From contig MU008217.1 of NCBI GenBank assembly GCA_010909165.1, positions 62,001 to 126,000 on the forward strand: a DNA stretch of 64,000 nucleotides, in the 5' to 3' direction. The stretch comes from Anthoceros angustus (Eukaryota > Plantae > Anthocerotophyta). Positions 1 to 34,466 of this stretch are shown in pieces; position 1 is the stretch's first letter, and every line of letters begins with the position of its first letter. The translations under genes and the position numbers were made by a program. The notes under the pieces are model-generated. The model made no database searches. It was not told the DNA's origin and saw nothing but the letters and a program-made list of their open reading frames with translations.

Positions 1-3000
1 AGACCATTTTACCGAGCACTTATTGTTTGATAGATGTTCAATTTTACCTTTGCATTCGTCCGCATTGGATGACGAGCACCGCCACGCCTTGCTTTCTTTT
101 ATTGAGCTTGATCAAGTCATCAAGACTCAATTTGCCTTCCTTAGCAGCGGTTTCATGCATGTGGTGACCGCCACCGTGGTCCTTTGCCTTAAGCTTGATC
201 AAGTCATGCTTATTCTTTTATTGAGCTTGATCAAGTCATCAAGACTCAATTTGCCTTCCTTAGCAGCGGTTTCATGCATGTGGTGACCGCCACCGTGGTC
301 CTTTGCCTTAAGCTTGATCAAGTCATCCACATTCTTTTATTGAGCTTGATCAAGTCATCAAGACTTAGATGACCACAACGTTGTCTTAGGTCCTCGAGCA
401 ACTCATAATTATTGCTTGGTCGCGAGGAATTCATTATTGCTTGGATGTTTGTGCTCTATAATGTATTTAAAATTGGTCAATATGGATTATTTTTGTGAAA
501 ATATATTCAACCGTGGTGGTTGCTCTCAATATCCTAGGCAAATCAATTGTTAACCGTTGCAAGGATGAGCAATTTTACCGACCACTTATTGTTTGATAGA
601 TGTTCAATTTTACCGACCACTTATTGTTTGATAGATGTTCAATTTTATAGACCACTTATTGTTTGATAGATGTTCAATTTTATGGACCACTTATTGTTTG
701 ATAGATGTTCAATTTTATAGACCACTTATTGTTTGATAGATGTTCAATTTCTTGACCACTTATTGTTTGATAGATGTTCAATTTTACCGAGCACTTATTG
801 TTTGATAGATGTTCAATTTTATAGACCACTTATTGTTTGATAGATGTTCAATTTTACCGAGCACTTATTGTTTGATAGATGTTCAATTTTATACACCACT
901 TATTGTTTGATAGATGTTCACGAGGTGGAGCGTGGCGAGGATGAGCAACTTAACAAACCACTTCTTGTTAGGCTTTCCTAAGGTGCAACGTTGCAAGGAT
1001 GAGCAACTTAACAAACCACTTAGATGATGGCTCCTTTATAGATGACCTTGAATACTAGATACTATACAGGATATTTGATATTTCCTTTCTAGCATCTTCA
1101 AATTGTTTTCTTGTGATAGGTACTATAAATGGATATTTGATATTTCCTTTATGGCACGTTCAAGTTGTTTTCTTGTAATACATACTATTAATGGATATAT
1201 GATATTTCCTTTCTAGCATCTTCAAATTTCATGGCCAAACGGAAAAAACATTACTACAATAATATAAATTAAACCACTTCTTGTTCTTCTTGTTCTTCTT
1301 CATCTTCTTCTTGTTCTTCTTGTTAGGCTTTCCTAAGGTGCAAGGATGATTTCAAGGATGAGCAATTTTACCTTTGCATTCGTCTAGACCATTTTACCGA
1401 CCACTTATTGTTTGATAGATGTTCAATTTTACCTTTGCATTCGTCTAGACCATTTTACCGACCACTTATTGTTTGATAGATGTTCAATTTTATGGACCAC
1501 TTATTGTTTGATAGATGTTCAATTTTACCGAGCACTTATTGTTTGATAGATGTTCAATTTTACCTTTGCATTCGTCTAGACCATTTTACCGACCACTTAT
1601 TGTTTGATAGATGTTCTAATTGTTTTCTTGTGAATACATAAGCATTGGGATTCTCATCTTCTTCTCTTCTTCTTCCTCTTCATCTTCTTCTTGTTCTTCT
1701 TCATCTTCTTCTTCTTCTTCTTCTTGTTTGAATTTTACCGACCACTTATTGTTTGATAGATGTTCAATTTTATACACCACTTATTGTTTGATAGATGTTC
1801 AATTTTATACACCACTTATTGTTTGATAGATGTTCAATTTTACCGCAATCATATATCGACAAGCTAGGGCACAAGTAACACTAAATATGCACAAGTTCCA
1901 CTAAGTACTTAAGCATCTAACTGCACACCAAAGTGTGTAGTTACAAACCTTGGAGGTTAAGTAGGGTGCGATTCGTCTTGCTACACTTATTGTTTGATAG
2001 ATGTTCACGAGGTGGAGCGTGGCGAGGATGAGCAACAACAAAATCCAAATGTAAAATTGAACATCTATCAAACAACAAACCACTTCTTGTTCTTCTTGTT
2101 TGAATTTTACCTTTGCATTCGTCCGCATTGGATGACGAGCACCGCCACGCCTTGCTTTCTTTTATTGAGCTTGATCAAGTCATCAAGACTCAATTTGCCT
2201 TCCTTAGCAGCGGTTTCATGCATGTGGTGACCGCCACCGTGGTCCTTTGCCTTAAGCTTGATCAAGTCATGCTTATTCTTTTATTGAGCTTGATCAAGTC
2301 ATCAAGACTCAATTTGCCTTCCTTAGCAGCGGTTTCATGCATGTGGTGACCGCCACCGTGGTCCTTTGCCTTAAGCTTGATCAAGTCATCCACATTCTTT
2401 TATTGAGCTTGATCAAGTCATCAAGACTTAGATGACCACAACGTTGTCTTAGGTCCTCGAGCAACTCATAATTATTGCTTGGTCGAGGAATTCATTATTG
2501 CTTGGATGTTTGTGCTCTATAATGTATTTAAAATTGGTCAATATGGATTATTTTTGTGAAAATATATTCAACCGTGGTGGTTGCTCTCAATATCCTAGGC
2601 AAATCAATTGTTAACCGTTGCAAGGATGAGCAATTTTACCGACCACTTATTGTTTGATAGATGTTCAATTTTACCACTTATTGTTTGATAGATGTTCAAT
2701 TTTATAGACCACTTATTGTTTGATAGATGTTCAATTTTATGGACCACTTATTGTTTGATAGATGTTCAATTTTATAGACCACTTATTGTTTGATAGATGT
2801 TCAATTTCTTGACCACTTATTGTTTGATAGATGTTCAATTTTAGAGCACTTATTGTTTGATAGATGTTCAATTTTATAGACCACTTATTGTTTGATAGAT
2901 GTTCAATTTTAGAGCACTTATTGTTTGATAGATGTTCAATTTTATACACCACTTATTGTTTGATAGATGTTCACGAGGTGGAGCGTGGCGAGGATGAGCA

Positions 3001-6000
3001 ACAACAAACCACTTCTTGTTAGGCTTTCCTAAGGTGCAACGTTGCAAGGTGGGCAACTCAACCAACCACTTAGATGATGGCTCCTTTATAGATGACCTTG
3101 AATACTAGATACTATACAGGATATTTGATATTTCCTTTCTAGCATCTTCAAATTGTTTTCTTGTGATAGGTACTATAAATGGATATTTGATATTTCCTTT
3201 ATGGCACGTTCAAGTTGTTTTCTTGTAATACATACTATTAATGGATATATGATATTTCCTTTCCAAAGATGTTCTAATTGTTTTCTTGTGGTAGCGATAT
3301 TATATTTATATTTGGTATTTTCTTTTGTGGTATCTTTGAATTTTACCACTTATTGTTTGATAGATGTTCACGAGGTGGAGCGTGGCGAGGATGAGCAATT
3401 TTACCGAGCACTTATTGTTTGATAGATGTTCAATTTCTTTCACGCTCGTATTGGTCCATCTTAGTAACAAAATGGCATGGTTGTGCAACTTAATAATTAA
3501 GTCTCCTCACTTGCCTTCTTAATGTACAACATGTCAATTGGAGAACTAAACTACACCAAATGTAAAATTGAACATCTATCAAACAACAAACCACTTCTTG
3601 TTAGGCTTTCCTAAGGTGCAAGCGGCAATTAGGAGACCCCAATACTTTAGTGTAGATGAGACCATCCAATTTGTACACCTTTGACATAAAGAACTACTCA
3701 TCATATTATGATTTCAAGGATGATTTCAAGGATGATTTCAAGGACTATCAAACAACAAACCACTTCTTGTTCTTCTTCCTCTTCATCTTCTTCTTGTTCT
3801 TCTTCTTCCTCTTCATCTTCTTCTTCCTCTTCATCTTCTTCATCTTCTTCTTGTTTGAATTTTACCACTTATTGTTTGATAGATGTTCAATTTTATACAC
3901 CACTTATTGTTTGATAGATGTTCACGAGGTGGAGCGTGGCGAGGATGAGCAACAACAAAATCCAAATGTAAAATTGAACATCTATCAAACAACAAAATCC
4001 AAATGTAAAATTGAACATCTATCAAACAACAAACCACTTCTTGTTCTTCTTCATCTTCTTCATTTGTTCTTCTTCATTTGTTCTTCTTCTTGTTCTTCTT
4101 CATTTGTTCTTCTTCATCTTCTTCATTTGTTCTTCTTCATCTTCTTCTTGTTAGGCTTTCCTAAGGTGCAAGCGGCAATTAGGAGACCCCAATACTTTAG
4201 TGTAGATGAGACCATCCAATTTGTACACCTTTGACATAAAGAACTACTCATCATATTATGATTTCAAGGATGATTTCAAGGATGAGCAATTTTACCACTT
4301 ATTGTTTGATAGATGTTCAATTTTATAGACCACTTATTGTTTGATAGATGTTCACGAGGTGGAGCGTGGCGAGGATGAGCAACTTAACAAACCACTTCTT
4401 GTTCTTCTTCACCTCTAGGTATTGTATGTATACATGTTTAGTATAGTGATTATTTTTGTGAAAATATATTCAACCGTGGTGGTTGCTCTCAATATCCTAG
4501 GCAAATCAATTGTTAACCGTTGCAAGGATGAGCAACTTAATAATTAAGTCTCCTCACTTGCCTTCTTAATGTACAACATGTCAATTGAGAACTAAACTAC
4601 ACCAAATCTTTATCAAGGTGCCCAATATTGCAAGGTGGGCAACTCAACCAACCACTTAGATGACCACAACGTTGTCTTAGGTCCTCGAGCAACTCATAAT
4701 TATTGCTTGGTCGCGAGGAATTCATTATTGCTTGGTCGCGAGGAATTCATTATTGCTTGGATGTTTGTGCTCTATAATGTATTTAAAATTGGTCAATATG
4801 GATTATTTTTGTGAAAATATATTCAACCGTGGTGGTTGCTCTCAATATCCTAGGCAAATCAATTGTTAACCGTTGCAAGGATGATTTCAAGGATGAGCAA
4901 CAACAAACCACTTCTTGTTCTTCTTCTTCATCTTCTTCATCTTCTTCTTCATCTTCTTCATCTTCTTCTTGTTAGGCTTTCCTAAGGTGCAAGCGGCAAT
5001 TAGGAGACCCCAATACTTTAGTGTAGATGAGACCATCCAATTTGTACACCTTTGACATAAAGAACTACTCATCATATTATGATTTCAAGGATGAGCAACT
5101 TTACCACTTATTGTTTGATAGATGTTCACGAGGTGGAGCGTGGCGAGGATGAGCAACTTAATAATTAAGTCTCCTCACTTGCCTTCTTAATGTACAACAT
5201 GTCAATTGAGAACTAAACTACACCAAATCTTTATCAAGGTGCCCAATATTGCAAGGATGATTTCAAGGATGATTTCAAGGATGAGCAATTTTACCGACCA
5301 CTTATTGTTTGATAGATGTTCAATTTTACCACTTATTGTTTGATAGATGTTCACGAGGTGGAGCGTGGCGAGGATGAGCAATTTTACCACTTATTGTTTG
5401 ATAGATGTTCAATTTTACCGACCACTTATTGTTTGATAGATGTTCACGAGGTGGAGCGTGGCGAGGATGAGCAATTTTACCGAGCACTTATTGTTTGATA
5501 GATGTTCTAATTGTTTTCTTGTGAATACATAAGCATTGGGATTCTCATCTTCTTCATCTTCTTCATCTTCTTCTTCATCTTCTTCATCTTCTTCTTGTTA
5601 GGCTTTCCTAAGGTGCAAGCGGCAATTAGGAGACCCCAATACTTTAGTGTAGATGAGACCATCCAATTTGTACACCTTTGACATAAAGAACTACTCATCA
5701 TATTATGATTTCAAGGACTATCAAACAACAAACCACTTCTTGTTAGGCTTTCCTAAGGTGCAAGCGGCAATTAGGAGACCCCAATACTTTAGTGTAGATG
5801 AGACCATCCAATTTGTACACCTTTGACATAAAGAACTACTCATCATATTATGATTTCAAGGATGATTTCAAGGATGATTTCAAGGATGATTTCAAGGATG
5901 ATTTCAAGGATGAGCAACTTAACAAACCACTTCTTGTTCTTCTTCATTTGTTCTTCTTGTTAGGCTTTCCTAAGGTGCAAGCGGCAATTAGGAGACCCCA

Positions 6001-7005
6001 ATACTTTAGTGTAGATGAGACCATCCAATTTGTACACCTTTGACATAAAGAACTACTCATCATATTATGATTTCAAGGATGATTTCAAGGATGAGCAACT
6101 TAACAAACCACTTCTTGTTCTTCTTCATTTGTTCTTCTTCATTTGTTCTTCTTCTTCATTTGTTCTTCTTGTTAGGCTTTCCTAAGGTGCAAGCGGCAAT
6201 TAGGAGACCCCAATACTTTAGTGTAGATGAGACCATCCAATTTGTACACCTTTGACATAAAGAACTACTCATCATATTATGATTTCAAGGACTATCAAAC
6301 AACAAAATCCAAATGTAAAATTGAACATCTATCAAACAACAAAGAAACATACAACCATATTACATACATATGGTGACCGCCACCGTGGTCCTTTGCCTTA
6401 AGCTTGATCAAGTCATCCACATTCTTTTATTGAGCTTGATCAAGTCATCCACATTCTTTTATTGAGCTTGATCAAGTCATCCACATTCTTTTATTGAGCT
6501 TGATCAAGTCATCAAGATCAAACAACAAACCACTTCTTGTTAGGCTTTCCTAAGGTGCAAGCGGCAATTAGGAGACCCCAATACTTTAGTGTAGATGAGA
6601 CCATCCAATTTGTACACCTTTGACATAAAGAACTACTCATCATATTATGATTTCAAGGATGATTTCAAGGATGAGCAACTTAACAAACCACTTCTTGTTC
6701 TTCTTCATCTTCTTCATTTGTTCTTCTTCTTCCTCTTCATCTTCTTCATTTGTTCTTCTTGTTTGAATTTTACCGAGCACTTATTGTTTGATAGATGTTC
6801 ACGAGGTGGAGCGTGGCGAGGATGAGCAACTTAACAAACCACTTCTTGTTCTTCTTCATCTTCTTCTTCCTCTTCATCTTCTTCATTTGTTCTTCTTGTT
6901 AGGCTTTCCTAAGGTGCAAGCGGCAATTAGGAGACCCCAATACTTTAGTGTAGATGAGACCATCCAATTTGTACACCTTTGACATAAAGAACTACTCATC
7001 ATATT

Positions 7006-7150
7006 ATGATTTCAAGGATGATTTCAAGGATGATTTCAAGGATGATTTCAAGGATGATTTCAAGGATGATTTCAAGGATGATTTCAAGGATGATTTCAAG
7101 GATGATTTCAAGGATGATTTCAAGGATGATTTCAAGGATGATTTCAAGGA
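7006..7150 (+). repeat. 12-bp tandem repeat (ATGATTTCAAGG) x12
   Basis: Perfect repeat; an 11-copy run lies at 9655-9787 and runs of 1-5 copies occur elsewhere. Confidence 0.95.
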
Positions 7151-10100
7151 TGAGCAACAACAAAATCCAAATGTAAAATTGAACATCTATCAAACAATAG
7201 AGAGAACCTTGTGCATCTTTGAATCTTTAGACATTTGGCTTGGGCTCGATATCGATCCCCGCTCCTTCTTGTTAGGCTTTCCTAAGGTGCAAGCGGCAAT
7301 TAGGAGACCCCAATACTTTAGTGTAGATGAGACCATCCAATTTGTACACCTTTGACATAAAGAACTACTCATCATATTATGATTTCAAGGATGATTTCAA
7401 GGATGAGCAATTTTACCGAGCACTTATTGTTTGATAGATGTTCACGAGGTGGAGCGTGGCGAGGATGAGCAATTTTACCGAGCACTTATTGTTTGATAGA
7501 TGTTCACGAGGTGGAGCGTGGCGAGGATGAGCAACTTAACAAACCACTTCTTGTTCTTCTTCCTCTTCATCTTCTTCATTTGTTCTTCTTCTTGTTAGGC
7601 TTTCCTAAGGTGCAAGCGGCAATTAGGAGACCCCAATACTTTAGTGTAGATGAGACCATCCAATTTGTACACCTTTGACATAAAGAACTACTCATCATAT
7701 TATGATTTCAAGGACTATCAAACAACAAAATCCAAATGTAAAATTGAAGTTCAAAACCGCCCAATCATATATGATATTTCCTTTCCAAAGATGTTCTAAT
7801 TGTTTTCTTGTGGTAGCGATATTATATTTATATTTGGTATTTTCTTTTGTGGTATCTTTGAATTTCTTTCACGCTCGTATTGGTCCATCTTAGTAACAAA
7901 ATGGCATGGTTGTGCAACTTAATAATTAAGTCTCCTCACCTTGCCTTCTTAATGTACAACATGTCAATTGGAGAACTAAACTACACCAAATGCTAAAGGA
8001 ATAGAAGTTGATGTGGGAAATAGTTACCACACGTGATTAGACAAAGGCATTTGTTTCGTTCCTTGATGAACTTTGTGACGTGAACTAAGCAATGTCATGC
8101 CTAACACTTCAGCCCAAATGTGGTAACATGGTCATAGTTTTAACCTTATCAATGTTATGAATTGTGTGCTAAACTTACGTCAACTTAAGGCTGGCCTTGA
8201 TTGCCACGAACCTCTTATGTTGAAGCTCACGATGGCCTCCCAAAACTGCTTCTTACTAAGGGCTGTCCATGGCATTCAAACCTTCATCAAAAGGAGCCAT
8301 TCGTATATCTAGTTTGCACACCAAATCTTTATCAAGGTGCCCAATATTGCAAGGTGCAAGCGGCAATTAGGAGACCCCAATACTTTAGTGTAGATGAGAC
8401 CATCCAATTTGTACACCTTTGACATAAAGAACTACTCATCATATTATGATTTCAAGGATGATTTCAAGGACTATCAAACAACAAAACAAAACAAACCTAG
8501 ACTTGTAGGATAAGAGGTTAGTCGAGAGACTTTGCGTTGTGGAATAGCAGGGTTTGACCTACTTTGGGCTTTTCTTGTGAATACATAAGCATTGGGATTC
8601 TCATCTTATCTCCATTTTCAAATTTCATGGCCAAACGGAAAAAACATTACTACAATAATATAAATTAAACCACTAGCACAACAAAAATTAAGGCATAATA
8701 AAGCAAAAAAAAGAATAAAACATAAAACATAAAACAAAACAAAACCTCAAACAACAAAACAAAACAATAGAGAGAACCTTGTGCATCTTTGAATCTTTAG
8801 ACATTTGGCTTGGGCTCGATATCGATCCCCGCTCCTTCTTGTCTGGTGGTAACACAATATCAAGGCGATGTGCTCGCCGTGCATTGAACTTGAGAATTTA
8901 TGGTCTTGGTAATGACATTGTTGCACCACTTGTGGCTGCAAAGGAGTTTCTCAATAGGCTAGAGGTCGATGTGGTCGTTGCTCGAGCCTTGCTTGGAAAG
9001 GATCTTTGGTAGAGACCGCATATTGATTATGACTTTTCACTCCATGGATGATCGCCTCCAGTTATGAAGGCTAGGTCTATGTTACAGACGACTCTTATAT
9101 ATCAATCGATCTTACACCATTGCAATGGAAGATTAAGAAGGAGAAGTTACCGAGCACTTATTGTTTGATAGATGTTCTAATTGTTTTCTTGTAATACATA
9201 CTATTAATGGATATTTGATATTTCCTTTATGGCACGTTCAAGTTGTTTTCTTGTGATAGGTACTATAAATGGATATTTGATATTTCCTTTCTAGCATCTT
9301 CAAATTGTTTTCTTGTGGTATCTTTGAATTTTACCGCAATCTATGTAGTTGCCCAATATTGCAAGGATGATTTCAAGGATGAGCAACTTAACAAAACCAC
9401 TTCTTGTTCTTCTTCCTCTTCCTATAACATGTGCCGCCACACTCCCATTTGGGGTCGTTGGTTTGCCATCAAGATCAAACAACAAAACCACTTCTTGTTC
9501 TTCTTCATCTTCTTCTTCCTCTTCATCTTCTTCATTTGTTCTTCTTGTTAGGCTTTCCTAAGGTGCAAGCGGCAATTAGGAGACCCCAATACTTTAGTGT
9601 AGATGAGACCATCCAATTTGTACACCTTTGACATAAAGAACTACTCATCATATTATGATTTCAAGGATGATTTCAAGGATGATTTCAAGGATGATTTCAA
9701 GGATGATTTCAAGGATGATTTCAAGGATGATTTCAAGGATGATTTCAAGGATGATTTCAAGGATGATTTCAAGGATGATTTCAAGGATGAGCAACTTAAT
9801 AATTAAGTCTCCTCACTTGCCTTCTTAATGTACAACATGTCAATTGAGAACTAAACTACACCAAATCTTTATCAAGGTGCCCAATATTGCAAGGATGAGC
9901 AACTTAACAAAACCACTTCTTGTTAGGCTTTCCTAAGGTGCAAGCGGCAATTAGGAGACCCCAATACTTTAGTGTAGATGAGACCATCCAATTTGTACAC
10001 CTTTGACATAAAGAACTACTCATCATATTATGATTTCAAGGATGAGCAACTTAACAAAACCACTTCTTGTTAGGCTTTCCTAAGGTGCAAGCGGCAATTA

Positions 10101-10965
10101 GGAGACCCCAATACTTTGGGCTTTTCTTGTGAATACATAAGCATTGGGATTCTCATCTTATCTCCATTTTCAAATTTCATGGCCAAACGGAAAAAACATT
10201 ACTACAATAATATAAATTAAACCACTAGCACAACAAAAATTAAGGCATAATAAAGCAAAAAAAGAATAAAACATAAAACATAAAACAAAACAAAACCTCA
10301 AACAACAAAACAAAACAAAACAATAGAGAGAACCTTGTGCATCTTTTGAATCTTTAGACATTTGGCTTGGGCTCGATATCGATCCCCGCTCCTTCTTGTC
10401 TGGTGGTAACACAATATCAAGGATGATTTCAAGGATGAGCAATTTTACCTTTGCATTGAACTTGAGAATTTATGGTCTTGGTAATGACATTGTTGCACCA
10501 CTTGTGGCTGCAAAGGAGTTTCTCAATAGGCTAGAGGTCGATGTGGTCGTTGCTCGAGCCTTGCTTGGAAAGGATCTTTGGTAGAGACCGCATATTGATT
10601 ATGACTTTTCACTCCATGGATGATCGCCTCCAGTTATGAAGGCTAGGTCTATGTTACAGACGACTCTTATATATCAATCGATCTTACACCATTGCAATGG
10701 AAGATTAAGAAGGAGAAGTTACCGCTTCTTACTAAGGGCTGTCCATGGCATTCAAACCTTCATCAAGACTCAATTTCTTTCATGGGGATGAATTTGTGGT
10801 GTTTAGCCCTCGTTCATGCATTTCATTAACATTATTGATTGATTGAAGATTATTTGTCTTGTTTGAATTTTACCTTTGCATTCGTCTAGACCATTTTACC
10901 GCAATCTATGTAGTTGCCATATTTCAATCCTATGACGAAGATCCGTCCTTAGTGGACTTGAATAA

Positions 10966-11171
10966 ATTTCTTCTTCTCTTCATCTTCTTCTTCTTCATTT
11001 GTTCTTCTTGTTCTTCTTTGTTCTTCTTCTTCTTCTCTTCTTCATCTTCTTCTTTGTTCTTCTTCTTCTTCTTCTTCTTCTTCTTCCTCTTCATCTTCTT
11101 CTTCTTCTTGTTCTTCTTGTTCTTCTTCTTGTTCTTCTTCTTCTCTTCTTCTTCATCTTCTTCTTCTTCTT
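10966..11171 (+). repeat. Degenerate (TTC)n microsatellite
   Basis: TTC/TTG/CTC/ATC triplet run; similar runs at 1655-1725, 3765-3850, 4035-4150 and 14350-14520. Confidence 0.9.
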
Positions 11172-14100
11172 ACAGTTATTAATTGTATTTAGAAAACTAT
11201 GAAACTTCTTCACCTCTAGGTATTGTATGTATACATGTTTAGTATAGTGATTATTTTTCACTAGCATAGTAAATAAAAATTATTTATTTAATTATTTATG
11301 TATGCTATTCTTTGCAACAACAAAGAAACATACAACCATATTACATACATATCAGGCCCTTCTTGTTTCCACCTTTAAATTTGCATACTAAATTGTGCTA
11401 ACATGAAGTCTTGCGATATGCAATCTCGCATCACTTGACCATGGTACACATCTAGCTCCGCATCCAAGACCTCTGCACTTTTGACTATGGCGGAGGTTGG
11501 CTACCTCCTCTTCCTATAACATGTGCCGCCACACTCCCATTTGGGGTCGTTGGTTTGCCGCTTGTATTATCATTCGCATATCAATTGCCTCAATGGTCAT
11601 TGGTTTGCCATCAAGATCAAGTGGTTGTTTGGCTTAGTGGTTCGACGAGCTTTTGCCTTAAGCTTGATCAAGTCATCCACATTCTTTTATTGAGCTTGAT
11701 CAAGTCATGCTTATTCTTTGCAACAAAGTCGTGGCTCAAGTATCACAAAGTTAGAGACTTCAACTTAAACTGTGAGACAAGATCAGACAACAAAATCCAA
11801 ATGTAAAAATTGAAGTTCAAAACCGCCCAATCATATATCGACAAGCTAGGGCACAAGTAACACTAAATATGCACAAGTTCCACTAAGTACTTAAGCATCT
11901 AACTTTGTGACGTGAACTAAGCAATGTCATGCCTAACACTTCAGCCCAAATGTGGTAACATGGTCATAGTTTTAACCTTATTAATGTTATGAATTGCGTG
12001 CTAAACTTACGTCAACTTAAGGCTGGCCTTGATTGCCACGAACCTCTTATGTTGAAGCTCACGATGGCCTCCCAAATGTGGTAACATGGTCATAGTTTTA
12101 ACCTTATTAATGTTATGAATTGCGTGCTAAACTTACGTCAACTTAAGGCTGGCCTTGATTGCCACGAACCTCTTATGTTGAAGCTCACGATGGCCTCCCA
12201 AAACTGCTTCTTACTAAGGGCTGTCCATGGCATTCAAACCTTCATCAAGACTTAGATGACCACAACGTTGTCTTAGGTCCTCGAGCAACTCATAATTATT
12301 GCTTGGATGTTTGTGCTCTATAATGTATTTAAAATTGGTCAATATGGATTATTTTTGTGAAAATATATTCAACCGTGGTGGTTGCTCGAGCCTTGCTTTC
12401 TTTCACGCTCGTATTGGTCCATCTTAGTAACAAAATGGCATGGTTGTGCAACTTAATAATTAAGTCTCCTCACTTGCCTTCTTAATGTACAACATGTCAA
12501 TTGGAGAACTAAACTACACCAAATCTTTATCAAGGTGCCCAATATTGCAAGGTGCAAGCGGCAATTAGGAGACCCCAATACTTTAGTGTAGATGAGACCA
12601 TCCAATTTGTACACCTTTGACATAAAGAACTACTCATCATATTATGATTTCAAGGATGATTTCAAGGATGAGCAACTTAACAAAACCACTTCTTGTTAGG
12701 CTTTCCTAAGGTGCAAGCGGCAATTAGGAGACCCCAATACTTTAGTGTAGATGAGACCATCCAATTTGTACACCTTTGACATAAAGAACTACTCATCATA
12801 TTATGATTTCAAGGATGAGCAACTTAACAAAACCACTTCTTGTTAGGCTTTCCTAAGGTGCAAGCGGCAATTAGGAGACCCCAATACTTTAGTGTAGATG
12901 AGACCATCCAATTTGTACACCTTTGACATAAAGAACTACTCATCATATTATGATTTCAAGGATGATTTCAAGGATGATTTCAAGGATGATTTCAAGGACT
13001 ATCAAACAACAAAGAAACATACAACCATATTACATACATATGGTGACCGCCACCGTGGTCCTTTGCCTTAAGCTTGATCAAGTCATCCACATTCTTTTAT
13101 TGAGCTTGATCAAGTCATCAAGACTCAATTGCCTTAAGCTTGATCAAGTCATGCTTATTCTTTTATTGAGCTTGATCAAGTCATCAAGATCAAACAACAA
13201 AGAAACATACAACCATATTACATACATATGGTGACCGCCACGCCTTGCTTTCTTTCACGCTCGTATTGGTCCATCTTAGTAACAAAATGGCATGGTTGTG
13301 CAACTTAACAAAACCACTTCTTGTTCTTCTTCATCTTCTTCATCTTCTTCATCTTCTTCTTGTTCTTCTTGTTAGGCTTTCCTAAGGTGCAAGCGGCAAT
13401 TAGGAGACCCCAATACTTTAGTGTAGATGAGACCATCCAATTTGTACACCTTTGACATAAAGAACTACTCATCATATTATGATTTCAAGGATGATTTCAA
13501 GGATGATTTCAAGGATGAGCAACTTAATAATTAAGTCTCCTCACTTGCCTTCTTAATGTACAACATGTCAATTGGAGAACTAAACTACACCAAATGTAAA
13601 ATTGAACATCTATCAAACAACAAAATCCAAATGTAAAATTGAACATCTATCAAACAACAAAATCCAAATGTAAAATTGAACATCTATCAAACAACAAAAC
13701 CACTTCTTGTTCTTCTTGTTCTTCTTCTTCCTCTTCATCTTCTTCATTTGTTCTTCTTGTTCTTCTTCATCTTCTTCTTGTTAGGCTTTCCTAAGGTGCA
13801 AGCGGCAATTAGGAGACCCCAATACTTTAGTGTAGATGAGACCATCCAATTTGTACACCTTTGACATAAAGAACTACTCATCATATTATGATTTCAAGGA
13901 TGAGCAATTTTACCTTTGCATTCGTCCGCATTGGATGACGAGCACCGCCACGCCTTGCTTTCTTTTATTGAGCTTGATCAAGTCATCAAGACTCAATTGC
14001 CTTCCTTAGCAGCAGCGGTTCCATACATATGGTGACCGCCACCGTGGTCCTTTGCCTTAAGCTTGATCAAGTCATGCTTATTCTTTTATTGAGCTTGATC

Positions 14101-14909
14101 AAGTCATCAAGACTCAATTGCCTTCCTTAGCAGCGGTTTCATGCATGTGGTGACCGCCACCGTGGTCCTTTGCCTTAAGCTTGATCAAGTCATCCACATT
14201 CTTTTATTGAGCTTGATCAAGTCATCAAGACTTAGATGACCACAACGTTGTCTTAGGTCCTCGAGCAACTCATAATTATTTATGTATGCTATTCTTTGCA
14301 ACAACAAAATCCAAATGTAAAATTGAACATCTATCAAACAACAAACCACTTCTTGTTCTTCTTCATCTTCTTCATCTTCTTCATTTGTTCTTCTTCCTCT
14401 TCATCTTCTTCATTTGTTCTTCTTGTTCTTCTTCATCTTCTTCATTTGTTCTTCTTCATCTTCTTCATCTTCTTCATCTTCTTCTTCCTCTTCATCTTCT
14501 TCTTCCTCTTCATCTTCTTCTTGTTTCCACCTTTAAATTTGCAACAAAGTCGGGCTCAAGTATCACAAAGTTAGAGACTTCAACTTAAACCGTGAGACAA
14601 GATCAAACAACAAAATCCAAATGTAAAAATTGAAGTTCAAAACCGCCCAATCATATATCGACAAGCTAGGGCACAAGTAACACTAAATATGCACAAGTTC
14701 CACTAAGTACTTAAGCATCTAACCTGGCACACCAAAGTGTGTAGTTACAAACCTTGGAGGTTAAGTAGGGTGCAGTTCGTCTTGCTACACGGTTATCTGT
14801 AAGTCGTGTGTCAACACCTCCGGAGCCCCGCCTCGAGAACCTCTCGTCCTTGGCAACAGTTGCGTCCCGCATTGGATGACGAGCACCGCCACGCCTTGCT
14901 TTCTTTTTA

Positions 14910-15175
14910 TTGAGCTTGATCAAGTCATCAAGACTCAATTTGCCTTCCTTAGCAGTAGCGGTTCCATACATACGGTGACCACCACCGTGGTCCTTTGCCT
15001 TAAGCTTGATCAAGTCATGCTTATTCTTTTATTGAGCTTGATCAAGTCATCAAGACTCAATTGCCTTCCTTAGCAGCGGTTTCATGCATGTGGTGACCGC
15101 CACCGTGGTCCTTTGCCTTAAGCTTGATCAAGTCATCCACATTCTTTTATTGAGCTTGATCAAGTCATCAAGACT
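14910..15175 (+). repeat. ~119-bp subrepeat (2 copies plus a partial) carrying CTTGATCAAG palindromes
   Basis: TGAGCTTGATCAAGTCATCAAGACTCAATTTGCCTTCCTTAGCAGCGG...GTGACCGCCACCGTGGTCCTTTGCCTTAAGCTTGATCAAGTCAT is repeated. The same block occurs at 100-365, 2165-2430 and 13965-14230. Confidence 0.85.
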
Positions 15176-15380
15176 TAGATGACCACAACGTTGTCTTAGG
15201 TCCTCGAGCAACTCATAATTATTGCTTGGTCGCGAGGAATTCATTATTGCTTGGATGTTTGTGCTCTATAATGTATTTAAAATTGGTCAATATGGATTAT
15301 TTTTGTGAAAATATATTCAACCGTGGTGGTTGCTCTCAATATCCTAGGCAAATCAATTGTTAACCGTTGCAAGGATGAGC

Positions 15381-15726
15381 AATTTTACCGACCACTTATT
15401 GTTTGATAGATGTTCAATTTTACCGACCACTTATTGTTTGATAGATGTTCAATTTTAAAGACCACATATTGTTTGATAGATGTTCAATTTATGGACCACT
15501 TATTGTTTGATAGATGTTCAATTTTATAGACCACTTATTGTTTGATAGATGTTCAATTTTACCACTTATTGTTTGATAGATGTTCAATTTTACGAGCACT
15601 TATTGTTTGATAGATGTTCAATTTTACCGACCACTTATTGTTTGATAGATGTTCAATTTTACCGAGCACTTATTGTTTGATAGATGTTCAATTTTATACA
15701 CCACTTATTGTTTGATAGATGTTCAC
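15381..15726 (+). repeat. 31-bp minisatellite, about 10-11 units (CACTTATTGTTTGATAGATGTTCAATTTT plus a short variable linker)
   Basis: Direct inspection. Equivalent arrays with a largely conserved linker order at ~570-920 and ~2630-2970; scattered single units throughout 1-18300. Confidence 0.9.
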
Positions 15727-18700
15727 GAGGTGGAGCGTGGCGAGGATGAGCAACAACAAACCACTTCTTGTTAGGCTTTCCTAAGGTGCAAGCGTTGCGG
15801 TGGGCAACTCAACCAACCACTTAGATGATGGCTCCTTTATAGATGACCTTGAATACTAGATACTATACAGGATATTTGATATTTCCTTTCTAGCATCTTC
15901 AAATTGTTTTCTTGTGATAGGTACTATAAATGGATATTTGATATTTCCTTTATGGCACGTTCAAGTTGTTTTCTTGTAATACATACTATTAATGGATATA
16001 TGATATTTCCTTTCCAGATGTTCTAATTGTTTTCTTGTGGTAGCGATATTATATTATATTTGGTATTTTCTTTTGTGGTATCTTTGAATTTCTTTCACGC
16101 TGCTCGTATTGGTCCATCTTAGTAACAAAATGGCATGGTTGTGCAACTTAATAATTAAGTCTCCTCACTTGCCTTCTTAATGTACAACATGTCAATTGGA
16201 GAACTAAACTACACCAAATCTTGTAGGAATAGAAGTTGATGTGAAAATAGTTACCACACGTGATTAGACAAAGGCATTTGTTTCGTTCCTTGATGAACTT
16301 TGTGGCGTGAACTAAGCAATGTCATGCCTAACACTTCAGCCCAAATGTGGTAACATGGTCATAGTTTTAACCTTATTAATGTTATGAATTGCGTGCTAAA
16401 CTTACGTCAACTTAAGGCTGGCCTTGATTGCCACGAACCTCTTATGTTGAAGCTCACGATGGCCTCCCAAAACTGCTTCTTACTAAGGGCTGTCCATGGC
16501 ATTCAAAACCTTCATCAAAAGGAGCCATTCAGATATCTAGTTTGTGCACACCAAATCTTTATCAAGGTGCCCAATATTGCAAGGTGCAAGCGGCAATTAG
16601 GAGACCCCAATACTTTAGTGTAGATGAGACCATCCAATTTGTACACCTTTGACATAAAGAACTACTCATCATATTATGATTTCAAGGATGATTTCAAGGA
16701 CTATCAAACAACAAAACAAAACAAAACCTAGACTTGTAGGATAAGAGGTTAGTCGTAGAGACTTTGCGTTGTGGAATAGCAGGGTTTGACCTACTTTGGG
16801 CTTTTCTTGTGAATACATAAGCATTGGGATTCTCATCTTATCTCCATTTTCAAATTTCATGGCCAAACGGAAAAAACATTACTACAATAATATAAATTAA
16901 ACCACTAGCACAACAAAAATTAAGGCATAATAAAGCAAAAAAAAGAATAAAACATAAAACATAAAACAAAACAAAACCTCAAACAACAAAACAAAACAAT
17001 AGAGAACCTTGTGCATCTTTGAATCTTTAGACATTTGGCTTGGGCTCGATATCGATCCCCCGCTCCTTCTTGTTCTTCTTCACCTCTAGGTATTGTATGT
17101 ATACATGTTTAGTATAGTGATTATTTTTGTGAAAATATATTCAACCGTGGTGGTTGCTCTCAATATCCTAGGCAAATCAATTGTTAACCGTTGCAAGGAT
17201 GATTTCAAGGATGATTTCAAGGACTATCAAACAACAAAATCCAAATGTAAAATTGAAGTTCAAAACCGCCCAATCATATATCGACAAGCTAGGGCACAAG
17301 TAACACTAAATATGCACAAGTTCCACTAAGTACTTAAGCATCTAACTGCACACCAAATCTTTATCAAGGTGCCCAATATTGCAAGGATGAGCAATTTTAC
17401 CGACCACTTATTGTTTGATAGATGTTCAATTTTACCTTTGCATTCGTCTAGACCATTTTACCGAGCACTTATTGTTTGATAGATGTTCAATTTTATGGTC
17501 TTGGTAATGACATTGTTGCACCACTTGTGGCTGCAAAGGAGTTTCTCAATAGGCTAGAGGTCGATGTGGTGACCGCCACCGTGGTCCTTTGCCTTAAGCT
17601 TGATCAAGTCATCAAGACTCAATTGCCTTAAGCTTGATCAAGTCATCAAGACTTAGATGATGGCTCCTTTATAGATGACCACAACGTTGTCTTAGGTCCT
17701 CGAGCAACTCATAATTATTGCTTGGATGTTTGTGCTCTATAATGTATTTAAAATTGGTCAATATGGATTATTTTTGTGAAAATATATTCAACCGTGGTGG
17801 TTGCTCTCAATATCCTAGGCAAATCAATTGTTAACCGTTGCAAGGATGATTTCAAGGATGAGCAATTTTACCTTTGCATTCGTCTAGACCATTTTACCGA
17901 GCACTTATTGTTTGATAGATGTTCAATTTTACCTTTGCATTCGTCTAGACCATTTTACCGAGCACTTATTGTTTGATAGATGTTCAATTTTACCGCAATC
18001 TATGTAGTTGCCATATTTCAATCCTATGACGAAGATCCGTCCTTAGTGGACTTGAATAAATTTCTTCTTCTTACAGTTATTAATTGTATTTAGAAAACTA
18101 TGAAACTTCTTCACCTCTAGGTATTGTATGTATACATGTTTAGTATAGTGATTATTTTTGTGAAAATATATTCAACCGTGGTGGTTGCTCTCAATATCCT
18201 AGGCAAATCAATTGTTAACCGTTGCAAGGATGATTTCAAGGATGATTTCAAGGATGAGCAATTTTACCGACCACTTATTGTTTGATAGATGTTCAATTTT
18301 ATGGTCTTGGTAATGACATTGTTGCACCACTTGTGGCTGCAAAGGAGTTTCTCAATAGGCTAGAGGTCGATGTGGTGACCGCCACCGTGGTCCTTTGCCT
18401 TAAGCTTGATCAAGTCATCCACATTCTTTTATTGAGCTTGATCAAGTCATCAAGACTCAATTGCCTTAAGCTTGATCAAGTCATGCTTATTCTTTTATTG
18501 AGCTTGATCAAGTCATCAAGATCAAACAACAAAGAAACATACAACCATATTACATACATATGGTGACCGCCACCGTGGTCCTTTGCCTTAAGCTTGATCA
18601 AGTCATCCACATTCTTTTATTGAGCTTGATCAAGTCATGCTTATTCTTTTATTGAGCTTGATCAAGTCATCCACATTCTTTTATTGAGCTTGATCAAGTC

Positions 18701-20019
18701 ATCAAGACTTAGATGATGGCTCCTTTATAGATGACCACAACGTTGTCTTAGGTCCTCGAGCAACTCATAATTATTGCTTGGTCGCGAGGAATTCATTATT
18801 GATTGATTGATTGAAGATTATTTGTCTTGTTTGAATTTTACCTTTGCATTCGTCTAGACCATTTTACCGCAATCTATGTAGTTGCCATATTTCAATCCTA
18901 TGAAACGCTCCCTCTTGGCCCAGTAGCGGGTGGAAACTACCCGGAAGGATGGAGCTTGCAATTTTTCGTGCAGGGTTTCACGCATTGGAAGAGATGGGGA
19001 AGTGCACACTCTAAGAAATAGGGATGCGCTTACACGACCTTCCACTTGAGCTCAGATGCCTTCGGGCTCACGGGAGCAACAAATAGTGAGGACACAACGT
19101 GAGGCTACAGACGTTCACACCAAATTTATCAAAAACACAGTCAAGGATTGTTGGTTCGGAAATATATATGATACCCAGGGGGTGCAAGAGCTGCTTTCTT
19201 GCAGCCTGGTATCAGGGACAACTCCTGCCCGCGTGCCAGTCGTTGAAAGATGTTTCGCATCTGTGTATCATGGGGGTGTTGGCAAGCTATGATATGTAGC
19301 TGCACACATACACGCGATGAGACGGAGTTAAGGGAGAGGTATGAAAACCTCACAGTACTATGTTTCAAACGGGACTCCTACGTGGGATAACGGGCACTCT
19401 AGATAGTAACAACATTCACAGTGCAGAGTGTCACACAGCAGTATTTGGGCTACGCAGCAAGCGGGTGTGAACGAGCTTCCATTCTTGAGTCAATAGCTTG
19501 TCATGAGTGCAAGGGTGAGCAGTTACAGAAGGTGGTCATCGAACAGGACCAGACTCCTGGCCCGTGTCCCTCTTCACAAGGCACGGACAGCAGCATGAAA
19601 CCAAGAGAAAATGGGCAGGCACATAAGCCTGCCCTGTAGTCAGCACCCATCACGCTCACACTCCAAGAAAAGATACTAAGAAGCCTAAGGGCAGAGCCCC
19701 GCAGTTCGTTCAGTTTGATATTACAGAAAATGGGACTCTTCTTATAGTCTATCCGCATTCACAATCCCTGGTACTCGTTAAGGTGATGGCGGCTCAGAGA
19801 GCCCGATGTTCCAGCACATCTCTAGAAAATACATATTGTATGCTCGTAGAAGGGTAAGGCCAGCTTTAATTACACTTCTTCGGGGACCTCCCAACAGTAC
19901 CCACCGAAATACCGACGACACTATCTCCACTTCATGACGGTGGTGTGGTCGTTCACAGTACCTGGGCATCCTGCCATAGTCTGTCGTTAGCCTCATCTTC
20001 CCACAGCGGTTGCTGAACG

Positions 20020-23000
20020 ATGGCCACAGTATGGCAACCGGACCCGTTGTGGATCCATGAAATTGGTTTGTGCGCAGGGATTGTACTGGGAGCTCCCGCT
20101 CACCTTACTGTAGGGAGTGAATCCCTGGCAATCAAACAATCCAGGTGCAGCAGCGTAAGGAGCTCAGCACTTCCAATTCCGACAAATCGTTTGGGTTGGA
20201 ACGAGTTATCCAGCGATGGTCGTCGCCAGGAGCAGGAGAACTTGTGGCAACAATTTTTTCTGGACCCTACCATGTGGTGGGACAACAGACGAGATAAGAA
20301 GAGTTCCCGTGCGCCTGACTTCCGGCGTAAGGGGTCCGGCGAGGTCCTGTGGTTAAACAACATGTTCAAGCCAGCTTGGGTTGATGAGCAGCTCGTTTCC
20401 TTGGATATGCAGATGGGTCATGGTGCCTCTCCTTCCAAGTCCAGGTCTCCGCACAAGCCTGAACCTGGCAGGCGTACAAGATCGGAAATGGGCGTCGTTA
20501 CGGCTGTAAGTGTGATCACGTTATGTCAGCAGGGGAAGCTTTCTGAGGCCGTTGGAGCCCTGGAATCTCTGGCGCAAACAGACTCTGCTATTTCTCTGTC
20601 TCTGTTTTGCACGGTGCTCAAACTGTGTACAGCTAAGAAGGATTTGGTTGGGGGGCGACGAGTTCATGATCTCAGCGTCAAACTTGGGTACGAGTCGAAT
20701 GCATACTTGGGGAACCATATCTTGCGCATGTATGGATGTGGAGGTAGGCTAGAGGAGGCCATGGATGTGTTCAGCAGGGTAGGCAAACCAGATGTCATCA
20801 CGTGGGGTTCCATCATCTCTGCACATGCCAAACATGGGAAACCTAATGAGGCCATACAACTGTACCATGAGATGCGTAGGTCAGGAGTGAAGGCAAATGG
20901 TCACGTCTTTGTAGCTGCCCTTCAAGCTTGCGCATTTGCCGCCGACTTGGAATCTGGCAGAAAAGTGCACTGTGATGTGTTGCACTGTGGCTTTCCTACT
21001 GACTCTTTTGTTGGAAACTGCCTGGTGGACATGTATGCAAAATGTGGCCAACTGAAAGATGCACGCCACGTTTTTGACAGCATGGCCACAAAGGATGTGG
21101 TGACATGGACTTCCCTGATATCTGGGTATGTAAAATGTGGTGAACTGGAAGACGCACGGAAGGTTTTTGACAGCATGAGCACAAAGGATGTGGTGACATG
21201 GACTGCCCTGATATCTGGGTATGCACAACAAGGACAAGGCCAAGAGGCGCTTGTTGTGTATGGACAGATGGAGCAAGAAGGCCTGATTTTGGCTGACCGT
21301 TTTACTTTTTCTTGCCTTCTTAAGGCCTGTGGGAGTACTGGTGCCTTACAGAAGGGCAGGCAGCTGCACTCACAGATTGTGGAACAAAGACTGCTCGATG
21401 ACGTAGTGTTAGGCAACTGCCTGGTGGACATGTATGCAAAATGTGGTGAACTGGAAGACGCACGCCAGGTTTTTGACAGCATGAACAGAAAGAATGTGGT
21501 GACATGGAATGCCCTGATATCTGGGTATGCTGTGGTGAACTGAAGATGCACAGCATGGACTGATGTGGTGACATGGAATGCCCTGATTGCTGGGTATGCA
21601 GCAAGGACTTGACAGAGGCGCTTGTTGTGTATGGACAAATGGAGCAGGAGGGCCTCATTTGGCTGACCATGTTACTTTTGCTTGCGTTCTCAAGGCCTGT
21701 GCAAGCAATGGTGCCTTACAGAAGGGCAGGGAGCTGCATTCACTGATTGTTGAAAGAGGGCTGCTGGATAACGTAGTGTTGGGCAACTGCCTGGTGGACA
21801 TGTATGCAAAATGTGGTGAACTGGAAGATGCACGCCAGGTTTTTGACAGCATGAACAAAGAATGTGGTGACATGGATGCCCTGATATGCTGTGGTGAACT
21901 GAAGATGCACGCCAGGTTTTTGACAGCATGGCGAGGCGCTGATTGCTGGGTATGCAGCAAGGGCTTGGAGGTATGGACAAATGGAGCAGGAGGGCCTCAT
22001 TTGGCTGACCATATTTTTGCTTGCCTTCTGAAGGCCTGTGCAAGCACTGGTGCCTTACAGAAGGGCAGGCAGCTGCACTCACAGATTGTTGAAAGAGGAC
22101 TGCTGGATGACGTAGTGTTGGGCACTGCCTGGTGGACATGTATGCAAAATGTGGTGAACTGGAAGATGCACGCCAGGTTTTTGACAGCATGAACAAAGGA
22201 TGTGGTGACATGGACCGCCCTGATATCTGGGTATGGTACTTGTGATGATGGTCAGAGCACTAGCTTGTTTTGAGGAGATGTTAGTTGCCGGTATTCAGCC
22301 TGACGGTGCTACTTTTACTTGCTTTTTAGTAGCATGCAGTCATGGGGGACTGGTCCACGATGGTCGCAAGCACTTTGATTCCATGGCTGAACAGTATGGC
22401 ATCAAACCTACTCTTGAGCATTACAATTGCATGATTGATCTTCTTGGGCGTGCAGGCCATTTAGATGAGGCGGAGAAGATGCTTCTATCATGTGAGGGCC
22501 AAAGTAATCTTGTGGGCTTGACGTCTTTGTTGAATGCCTGCAAAAGTCATGGGGATATAGAGAGGGCGATATGGTGTTTTGAAAGCATTGTTAGGCTGGA
22601 CCCCCAGCAGGCCTCCGCATATGTGCTGATGGCGAATGCCTATGCAGATGCAGGAAGGTGGACCGATGTAGACAGGATTGAAACACAGAGAACAGTGGCA
22701 GGAGCTAACAAGAAACCTGCAGTGGCGACCATTGAGGTGAATAAGCAGGTACATAGTTTTTTGGTGGGAGAAAGGAGAGAGGATATTGCTCTTAAGGTAG
22801 AGAGCACGAATGCACGTCTGAAGCAGGAAGGAGGCCACGTACCTCAAACAAAATTGGTGTTGAAGCCAGTGTCTGAGAAGGAAAAGGAAGATGCGCTTTG
22901 CGGGCATGCCGAGAAGTTAGCTCTGGCTTTCGGTCTCTTGAGCACTCCGAGTGGGACACCTCTGGTGGTGACGAAGAATCTACGCATGTGCAGTGACTGC

Positions 23001-23114
23001 CACAGTTCTACGGAGATCATGTCAAGGGTTGAACAGAGAGACATTGTTGTAAGGGATGGGTACCGTGTGCATCGATTTGCCGATGGTTGCTGCAGTTGTA
23101 AGGGTCGACCGTGA
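20020..23114 (+). CDS. PLS-class PPR-E-DYW:KP (GRP-type) protein with an N-terminal OSB-type PDF motif; candidate U-to-C RNA editing factor; frameshifted between ~21530 and ~22250
   Basis: ORF 20020-21543: transit-peptide-like N-terminus, WQQFFLDPTMWWDNRRDKKSSRAPDFRRKGSGEVLWL..PAWV, then L/S/P/SS PPR motifs (DMYAKCG, VVTWTALISGYA). ORF 22233-23114: E1/E2, KPAVATIEV, HAEKLALAFG, KNLRMCSDCH, terminal CSCKGRP. Confidence 0.9.
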
Positions 23115-30733: not shown

Positions 30734-32120
30734 ATGCAAGAGGGTCCGACCCCAATCGAAGAGGGTTTGTATATTCACCCCCTTGCAAATTTATCGTGTT
30801 TGTTACCTTTGCAAGTACCCGAGGGAAGGTTCCAATCCATCTCCATGGATTTTGTGACAGCCCTCCCACGTACACGTACAGGAAAAGACAGCATATGGGT
30901 GATTATGGACCGGTTGTCCAAATGCTGTCACTTCATTCCAGTGAATTCCAACATCACAGCTCCAAGGTTGGCCAGCATATTCACAAAGGAAATCTTCAGA
31001 CTCCACGGTTGCCCACAGAACATCGTTTCAGACCGCGACCCCAAATTCACAGCAGGGTTCTGGCGAGCCTTCACCGAAACCCTGGGCATCCGACAGAGTT
31101 TGTCCTCCACATGCCACCGAATGGCGGTCGTAACGCCGACATGTGTGAAGATATGTTGAGGCACTACACGCATGACAAGCAAGGCAAGTGGGAAGAGTTC
31201 TTACCTCTCCTCGAATATGCCTACAACAGCTCCAAACATGCGGCCACAGGAGTGTCCCCCTTCAAGTTGTTATATGGAGAGAACCCACCACCACCTGGAT
31301 TATGGCCAGCTAGCGAAGCCAAATGGAGGAGCGCAGCCGAGGTTGCTGAGGACATCTGGCACGAGGTGCACAAAGCAAAGCAAAATCTTCTGTCAGCTCA
31401 GGACCGCGCCAAAAAGTCGAGCAACAAGCACAGGCGGGAAATTTCTTACACCATCGGCCAATTGGTGTGGTTGCGAATTCGTCCTCACCGGTATCCATCA
31501 CTACTCCAGCAAAAGCACAAGTTGGCGTATCGATTTGCAGGCCCCTTCAAGATCTTACGCAAGGTCAATGAGGTCGCCTACACACTCGATCTTCCAGCCG
31601 GTTGGCGTATGTGTCACACCTTCCATGTGAGCATGTTGAAGCCGATCCGTGAGACCCCACTTGCCCTTGCCGCCCTGCGAGACTCGCGCCAAGGGCAACC
31701 GGGAAACCTGCGCCCGCAGACCGGCTGTTTTTTTCGCCAACACGGTGCAATTCTCCAGGACCGACCACGAAGGACAACTCGACCACCACACCACCGACAT
31801 CAGCCACACCACCCCAGCCAAACAACACAGCATGGAAGCGGAACAAATTTCCCCACCATCCCACCACCGACATCACCACCACCTGACCAAACAACATGAA
31901 TGGGCGGAACAAATTTCCCCACCATCCCCAGCTCACCGACCTCGCCCAACATGATAGAATCCTTGAGGTACGCACTCGTCACTTGCGAAACCGATCTGTC
32001 CGTGATTACTTGGTTGGATGGAGCCAGAACCATACCGCCACTGGGAGCCGGACTTCGCAGACGATTTCCTCACCTCGCCGGCTTGAGGGCTGGAGGGACA
32101 GCCTCTTGCGGTGGGGAGAA
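30734..32120 (+). mobile_element. Ty3/Gypsy chromovirus 3' fragment (integrase plus chromodomain)
   Basis: SISMDFVTALP, IVSDRDPKFTAGFW, LEYAYNSSKHAATGVSPF, RFAGPFKIL (GPY/F module), chromodomain-like DRILEVRTRHLRNRSVRDYLVGW; PPT GGTGGGGAGAA at 32110-32120. Confidence 0.88.
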
Positions 32121-33156: not shown

Positions 33157-33808
33157 GTCACCATATGTATGGAACCGCTGCCGCTAAGGAAGGCAAATTG
33201 AGTCTTGATGACTTGATCAAGCTCAATAAAAAGAAAGCAAGGCGCGGCGGTGCTCGTCATCAATCACGGGGCCTTATTGTTCCCAGGTGAGAGGTTCTCG
33301 GCGGGGCTCGGAGGTGTTGACACACGACTTACGGATAGCAGTGTAGCAAGGCACGCACCCTACTTAACCTCCAAGGTTTGTAACTACACACTTTGGTGTG
33401 CAGTTAGATGCTTAAGTACTTAGTGGAACTTGTGCATATTTAGTGTTACTTGTGCCTAAAGTCGATATATGATTGGGCGGTTTTGAACTTCAATTTTACA
33501 TTTGGATTTTGTTGTCTGATCTTGTCTCACAGTTTAAGTTGAAGTCTCTAACTTTGTGATACTTAACCCTGACTTTGTTGCAACCCTAACGGTTATTGTG
33601 GTTCTCTTCTGTGCTCGTCGAACCACTAAGCCAAACAACCACTTGGATCTTGATAGCAAACCAATGACCATTGAGGCAATTGATATGCGAATGATAATAC
33701 AAGCGGCAAACCAACGACCCCCAAATGGGAGCGTGGCGGCACATGTTATAGGAAGAGGAGGTAGCCAACGACCTCCTGCCATAGTCAAAAGTGCAGAGGT
33801 CTTGGATG
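33157..33808 (-). repeat. Isolated inverted, unscrambled fragment of the mosaic-array template
   Basis: Reverse complement matches 11461-11900 and 14540-14980 collinearly, with some divergence. Confidence 0.9.
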
Positions 33809-34460: not shown

Positions 34461-34466
34461 TTGTAT

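Follow-up and report, generated by a model that had tools for sequence, protein, structure and literature searches.

Introduction

How repeated DNA can extend over many kilobases with no regular monomer is the question raised by one locus of the hornwort Anthoceros angustus. The locus is an array at positions 1-18903 of a 64,000-nucleotide stretch of DNA (assembly GCA_010909165.1, contig MU008217.1, positions 62,001 to 126,000 of the forward strand), referred to here as the window. An earlier note, made from the letters alone, had described the array as a mosaic produced by repeated template switching on a single template of about 4 kb. With moderate confidence, we take the array to be a real nuclear, monomer-less, satellite-like block built by repeated template switching in many rounds, on the strength of its closed vocabulary, its ratio of junctions to single-nucleotide polymorphisms (SNPs), the excess of microhomology at its joins, its templated patches and the nesting of its junctions.

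Extent and vocabulary of the array

1 to 18903, forward strand: scrambled closed-vocabulary array, whose left end lies beyond the window edge.
18903 to 18904, no strand: sharp right boundary, where a module also present at 10835-10937 stops after ...CCTATGA and unique DNA of 44-51% G+C follows.

The mosaic of about 19 kb proposed for positions 1-18903 is borne out by its k-mer vocabulary and by the graph walk described below. Repeated 16-mers make up 75-100% of most 500-nt bins of the array and 52-65% of three ancestral-like bins, with a mean 16-mer multiplicity of 3-24. The final repeated 16-mer finishes at 18903 and the next kilobase contains none, confirming the sharp boundary that had been claimed. 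Only 3,901 distinct 12-mers occur in the 18,903 nt, corresponding to a vocabulary of about 4 kb reused about fivefold. The single 4 kb template thus stands as a vocabulary of that size and not as a collinear template within the array, where 67% of the 14-mers fall within the richest 4.4-kb stretch and 81% within the richest one of 6 kb.

With a G+C content of 35-38% (about 36%) against 44-60% in the flank, the array is a high-copy, non-coding, compositionally distinct block, as satellites are. It lacks the head-to-tail repetition of one defined monomer that marks a classical satellite; a Tandem Repeats Finder (TRF) scan of the array gave no kilobase-scale period, detecting only mini-arrays of at most 12 copies. 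Open reading frames (ORFs) in the array are of low complexity, six-frame reading gave no signal and Pfam searches of the best open stretches no match, while no Rfam family matched in the window. Look-ups of the exact proteins of two array ORFs and two pentatricopeptide-repeat ORFs retrieved no record. A role in building a chromosome end, which had been suggested, finds no footing: the telomere repeats expected of a subtelomeric or telomere-building array are absent from the window, apart from a lone chance-level near-match at 48191, and genes lie on the right side.

Junction graph and mutation balance

A de Bruijn graph of the array was built at k=25, and its links were classed as junction-type or SNP-type. 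In this graph the array is a walk that takes 2,392 steps through 541 unbranched pieces. The pieces have a median length of 31 nt and reach 201 nt at most, and their scrambled order leaves the array without a regular monomer. Junction-type links number 220 distinct types with 493 occurrences, one per 38 nt, and their multiplicity spans 1 to 26. Only 3 SNP-type bubbles were found, so that junction-type differences exceed SNP-type differences by about 70 to 1 and the modules are nearly mutation-free, as the earlier note had held. The array is most likely young, recently and repeatedly re-copied. The remainder of the window has 31 junction-type, 17 SNP-type and 110 longer, unclassified links, and aligned tandem units of pentatricopeptide repeat (PPR) genes in the same window differ by ordinary substitutions; the imbalance therefore belongs to the array and not to the assembly generally.

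The individual junctions described before were all located, at 9146 (TTACCG), 10111 (TACTTT), 12070 (CCCAAA), 17563 and 18369 (both ATGTGGT), together with the triple jump at 12373-12391, and the hub words do have several alternative ways out, with 4-6 distinct exits each. Orientation is almost uniform, as stated earlier, with no inverted match of at least 28 nt within the array; the sole inverted relation is a diverged pair of 37-44-nt modules. Parsed with 14286-18903 as reference, the array fell into 275 exact segments with a median of 32 nt. Backward jumps numbered 100 and forward jumps 114, a balance that shows no directional bias but allows no conclusion, the reference being itself scrambled.

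Not every link is a jump. Small bubbles of 1-12 nt account for 27 of the 220 junction types, mostly 1-3 nt at A/T runs or CpG-containing sites. They have the look of simple slippage or of noise in a long-read consensus and should not pass for blunt joins. The junction set put forward earlier accordingly keeps its long-range jumps, and loses some zero- or low-microhomology members that are 1-4-nt homopolymer or CpG indels. Removal of the 27 bubbles leaves 193 long-range junction types, which were used for the overlap analysis.

Microhomology at the joins

Comparison of the junction graph with chance, which the earlier note had proposed, gives a clear excess. Among random blunt joins within the vocabulary, 81.5% would share 0-1 nt, 17.8% would share 2-5 nt and 0.7% at least 6 nt, whereas an overlap of at least 6 nt was observed in 182 of the 193 long-range types and 0-5 nt in the other 11. 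Overlaps step up at 6 nt, with counts of 9, 6, 11, 13, 9, 9 and 10 at 6 to 12 nt and then a flat tail to the k limit, and their median is about 15 nt; only 9 are pure CT low-complexity words. Since shared words grow roughly 3-4 times rarer with each added base, flat counts imply that junction use climbs steeply with match length. The process takes the longest match within reach. For scale, the longest matches that chance supplies in a few kilobases of unique sequence are about 9-10 nt. The step at 6 nt and the median do not suit Pol theta, one of the enzymes suggested earlier, as plant theta-mediated end joining (TMEJ) uses about 3 nt.

Templated patches and strand switching

The cited patches were verified by alignment, and the events that bear most directly on the mechanism are the following.

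10112 to 10724, forward strand: copy of 8560-9152 of about 600 nt with zero substitutions, set apart from it by the patch at 10416-10451 and, in short runs, by three changes in length of 1-5 nt.
10416 to 10451, forward strand: templated patch in which 30 nt of the commonest module replace 15 nt (the version at 8866-8880).
11461 to 11904, forward strand: collinear counterpart of the diverged single copy (33157-33808), except for the patch at 11651-11717.
11651 to 11717, forward strand: 67-nt patch of array modules replacing about 30 nt of the single copy inside 11461-11904.
11945 to 12202, forward strand: perfect 126-bp tandem duplication joined at CCCAAA.
12373 to 12400, forward strand: triple change of template inside 30 nt (12373-12391), with joins at GTTGCTC, GCCTTGCTT and TTTCTTT.

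The patch at 10416-10451 is entered at TCAAGG and left at TGCATT, with an in-register return. The version at 8866-8880 is the older one; a contig from another locus in a probable RNA run (X2) runs on into it. Both this patch and that at 11651-11717 combine a deletion with an insertion templated nearby, a signature of TMEJ. The first two jumps at 12373-12391 occur nowhere else in the array. The 37-bp unit stems from a strand switch at AAAATTGAA, where copying passed to the complement of the 35-bp unit. The duplication at about 12070 is joined at CCCAAA as reported, although it measures a perfect 126 bp and not about 128 bp. Many further tandem duplications of 12-147 bp at 100% identity were detected by TRF in the array. 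Patches, triple switch, strand switch and perfect tandem duplications point to copy-choice during DNA synthesis, with serial switches at microhomology accompanied by copy gain.

Among the perfect tandem duplications are 5591-5862 (145 bp) and 12656-12965 (147 bp), besides 11945-12202 (126 bp); two of these three are nucleosome-sized, which may be coincidence.

Ordinary satellite turnover offers a different account, in which unequal sister-chromatid exchange, single-strand annealing (SSA) and homologous recombination between short direct repeats shaped the array with no replicative switching. The uniform orientation, the preference for the longest shared words with many overlaps above 20 nt, and the free combination of entries and exits at hub modules would all agree with it, and homogenisation would account for the few SNPs. 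Exchange at 6-9-nt words, however, is not homologous recombination, and neither crossover nor SSA can produce in-register patches of 30-67 nt between 6-nt words, a threefold switch inside 30 nt or a jump to the opposite strand, so that the variants are not all derivable by reciprocal homologous exchange. The earlier objection to plain unequal crossover is upheld, and turnover of this kind is judged distinctly unlikely as the whole explanation.

Nested growth of blocks and mini-arrays

37 to 1228, forward strand: 1.2-kb block, also at 2100-3263 and 14863-16028, with 97-98.6% identity and differing nearly only by small indels.
570 to 920, forward strand: mini-array of a 35-bp unit with variable linker, also at 2631-2973 and 15380-15725; the array contains 60 instances of its 23-nt core.
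7006 to 7153, forward strand: 12 copies of the 12-bp unit ATGATTTCAAGG, also at 9655-9790, with 70 occurrences in the array.
7767 to 8842, forward strand: low-copy, ancestral-like block of 1.08 kb, also at 15996-17073.
10968 to 11171, forward strand: (TTC/CTT)n tract of about 200 nt, also at 14349-14522.
13590 to 13699, forward strand: mini-array of a 37-bp unit, also at 3951-4033, a diverged inverted relative of the 35-bp unit.
14539 to 14979, forward strand: ancestral-like segment, collinear with 33583-33157 and 91% identical.

Template switching as the origin of the array also has to account for its larger blocks. Each of the three copies of the 1.2-kb block holds about 25 junctions and an ordered set of ten variant 35-bp units; the copy closest to the right boundary retains an older, single-copy-like first subunit, the other two being homogenised. 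Joins nested in triplicated 1.2-kb blocks, together with multiplicities of 1-26, indicate many rounds of growth. The single processive run that had been envisaged is thereby contradicted, as some 25 junctions sit inside a block that was tripled later. What endures of the proposed re-copying at microhomology is copy-choice switching; the single run, Pol theta and reverse transcriptase (RT) do not.

Copies that are otherwise identical are separated by 1-4-nt deletions at CpG-containing sites (2483, 2665, 2843, 2911, 15592) and by length differences of A/T runs at 8705, 10256, 16505 and 16723. Such CpG and homopolymer deletions are typical of Nanopore consensus error in methylated repeats, a hint at both the technology and methylation of the array.

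Possible assembly artefact and read evidence

A simpler repeat, made of collinear monomers or being a collapsed family, may instead have been turned into a false walk over modules by read correction, local reassembly or polishing. The sequence does act like a k-mer-graph walk with error-free modules, over half of its junctions overlap by at least 24 nt (k=41), indels are left over at CpG and homopolymer sites, and published hornwort assemblies were built from Nanopore reads with racon and Pilon, or with MaSuRCA (PMC8075897). About 70 of the 220 junction types, however, overlap by less than 10 nt. A de Bruijn mis-walk makes every false join overlap by k-1, at least 20 nt, and graph walks at k>=21 cannot make these joins. 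The junctions moreover recur in a tree-like manner inside diverged larger blocks, and ordinary repeats in the same assembly appear normal.

Reads were consulted through Logan contigs of the only DNA-type public run with the sequence (X1). Aligned to 9795-15794, X1 gave 1,268 pieces, 74% of them at least 99% alike, which covered all 30 bins with no match longer than 96 nt. Word depth was roughly 100-14,500 in all bins but one (at 11), against about 40 for two low-copy pieces, and by a rough estimate these values agree in order of magnitude with the copy numbers in the assembly. One piece crosses the junction at 12548 at a depth of about 1,000, and among six loose ends examined, four lead into exits also present in the assembly, one with a single mismatch. 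Uniform modules in collinear order would give long unbranched contigs; X1 is as branched as the assembly, with the same exits and at least one junction at about 1,000x. The X1 evidence argues against an artefact, though not decisively.

Several points weigh against a real array. X1 has just 38% of sampled 31-mers and may be the sample behind the assembly. Its support comes from Logan contigs, which lose rare variants and so lend no individual confirmation to single-copy junctions such as 9146 and 10111, and the loose end at 10112 gives only the other context. The small CpG and homopolymer indels reveal an imperfect consensus in repeats. Since X1 is possibly the source sample, with rare paths dropped and residual indels present, an artefact is retained as an unlikely explanation that still carries appreciable weight.

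Origin of the vocabulary

33157 to 33808, reverse strand: single diverged inverted copy of about 650 nt of the vocabulary, with 91-96% identity, collinear and in the older order.

Array parts that match this single copy are low-copy in the array and of very high depth in X1; high depth despite low array copy places this part in a dispersed high-copy family. No pair of long terminal repeats (LTRs) and no transposable element (TE) ends were found around 33157-33808, the nearest TE material being copia and gypsy fragments. In addition, 40-45 nt at 10452-10496 and 10682-10721 are shared with contigs of X2, the probable RNA run of the same sample. These contigs, one of 1,996 nt at depth 266 and one of 563 nt at depth 24, continue into unrelated, GC-rich sequence. 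The vocabulary contains fragments of transcribed loci.

An exon-like open stretch lies inside the single copy (33158-33285), bordered by AG and GTGAGA. The exon-like piece at 33159-33284 has no protein relative among 1.84 billion representatives. About 650 nt past the single copy, in a TE-fragment-rich region, stands a 40-bp tandem repeat (34466-34789, 8 copies, 85% matches).

These shared stretches of 40-45 nt, along with a same-strand bias that is near absolute, could be read as signs of an RNA-templated origin, in which a reverse transcriptase would have switched within or among transcripts to make a mosaic cDNA that was then inserted and amplified. Against this, the array was seen to contain neither an RT gene or ORF nor a poly(A) tail, and it shows no target-site duplication and no junction of spliced exons; the exon-like piece lacks a protein relative, and in-register patches and perfect local tandem duplications arise at the level of DNA. 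The RT involvement raised in the earlier note is accordingly set aside, and an RNA-templated origin is regarded as very improbable.

Other features of the window

23798 to 26224, reverse strand: Ty1/copia pol fragments (RVT_2, integrase SH3, GAG-pre-integrase), with no LTR pair found.
30796 to 31899, forward strand: Ty3/gypsy integrase C-terminal fragment, with no LTR pair found.

To the right of the array lie PPR-E-DYW editing-factor genes or pseudogenes at 20020-23114, 35352-36353 and 38830-42362, and several PPR-DYW genes have broken frames. A PPR tandem array at 39907-41481 has a 484-bp unit (also at 21033-21225 and 36530-36717), each unit consisting of a 90-93-nt S-type motif three times head to tail, joined at a recurring GTATGCA. 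The pattern suggests that microhomology-mediated tandem duplication of the kind seen in the array also operates in genes. A 459-bp tandem repeat of 2 copies with 87% matches is located at 61220-62156.

Proposed mechanism and significance

Under repeated template switching in many rounds, the seed of the array would have been a few kilobases of non-coding DNA, comprising a dispersed high-copy repeat family and short fragments of transcribed loci. Synthesis would leave its template and re-anneal elsewhere in the same block at a match of at least 6 nt, preferably of tens of nt. The setting may be replication slippage, or template switching during fork restart or break repair, through out-of-register re-invasion resembling synthesis-dependent strand annealing (SDSA) or break-induced replication (BIR). 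Switching would nearly always be same-strand, yielding tandem duplications, deletions and short templated patches, and bigger blocks already bearing junctions would be duplicated in turn. Enzymes, trigger and timing we infer, the trigger possibly being long CTT/GAA tracts together with many direct repeats; the (TTC/CTT)n tracts might stall replication forks.

If real, the array is repeat DNA whose evolution is dominated by rearrangement, about 70 to 1 over point mutation, under a join rule (at least 6 nt, longer matches steeply preferred) that agrees with neither homologous recombination nor the end joining of plants. Hundreds of template-switch events would then be naturally recorded at a single locus, and the array would be an instance of satellite birth without a monomer. 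It would also be a candidate sequence for bryophyte centromere and heterochromatin searches, where tandem-repeat scans gave nothing. Should the array prove an artefact, many loci of a public assembly would share the fault, genes among them, and it ought to be flagged.

Neither long tandem arrays nor recognisable centromeres are described in the published hornwort genomes (PMC8075897, PMC10952607). As a lead and not a finding, aperiodic blocks like this array would have slipped past the published hornwort tandem-repeat screens. A bolder proposal, which we regard as speculative and rather improbable, is that same-strand template switching at matches of about 6-10 nt is active genome-wide, scrambling genes locally and building closed-vocabulary blocks of at least 80 kb, and that such blocks could be the heterochromatic or centromeric DNA reported missing in hornworts.

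Comparison with known systems

None of the classes compared here fits the junction rule, density and scale of the array together, and a literature search on scrambled satellites with microhomology junctions found no matching description.

Satellites with kilobase-scale monomers, potato Sobo among them, are one point of reference. Like long-monomer and retrotransposon-derived plant satellites, the array is non-coding, AT-richer than its flank, recently amplified and furnished with internal mini-arrays; it differs from long-monomer satellites in having no regular head-to-tail monomer, a module order scrambled about every 38 nt, and rearrangements exceeding point differences about 70 to 1. Plant satellites can derive from tandem repeats inside Ty3/gypsy elements (PMC7004042), and like retrotransposon-derived satellites the array is seeded by a dispersed repeat, with a diverged single copy 14 kb off near retrotransposon fragments.

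Replicative switching offers closer parallels in mechanism. Fork stalling and template switching (FoSTeS), microhomology-mediated break-induced replication (MMBIR) and chromoanasynthesis, reportedly described by Lee in 2007, Hastings in 2009 and Liu in 2011, usually involve a few to tens of junctions, microhomology of 2-5 nt, frequent inversions and a single event. With FoSTeS/MMBIR the array shares copy-number gain, serial switches, microhomology joins and short templated insertions. Unlike it, the array has hundreds of junction types, overlaps of at least 6 nt, almost one orientation and a multi-round history; in place of both orientations and one or few events it contains one old strand-switch junction and nested joins.

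Reshuffling of minisatellites by SDSA with out-of-register re-invasion occurs at human MS32 and at CEB1 in yeast. The array has the same-strand scrambling, patchy conversion, expansions and contractions of such loci, but its vocabulary comprises several kilobases of unrelated modules and not variants of one short unit. Pol theta end joining leaves templated insertions known as filler DNA, as does synthesis-dependent microhomology-mediated end joining (SD-MMEJ; PMC2943611), and the array patches likewise pair a deletion with an insertion copied from nearby after short-match annealing. Plant TMEJ works with a mean microhomology of about 2.4-3 nt, about 3 nt in Arabidopsis, and leaves small scars (PMC10923293), in contrast to the overlap floor of 6 nt, the median of about 15 nt and the product tens of kilobases long seen in the array.

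Mosaic repeats provide the last comparison. Although we know of no report of junction rules like those of the array for either system, the rye B-chromosome repeats E3900 and D1100, reportedly described by Langdon in 2000, and the overlapping short-repeat arrays of the cucumber mitochondrial genome, reportedly described by Lilly and Havey in 2001, resemble it in being assembled from fragments of unrelated sequences. The rye B repeats form a fixed long monomer and those of cucumber are organellar, whereas the array is nuclear and monomer-less.

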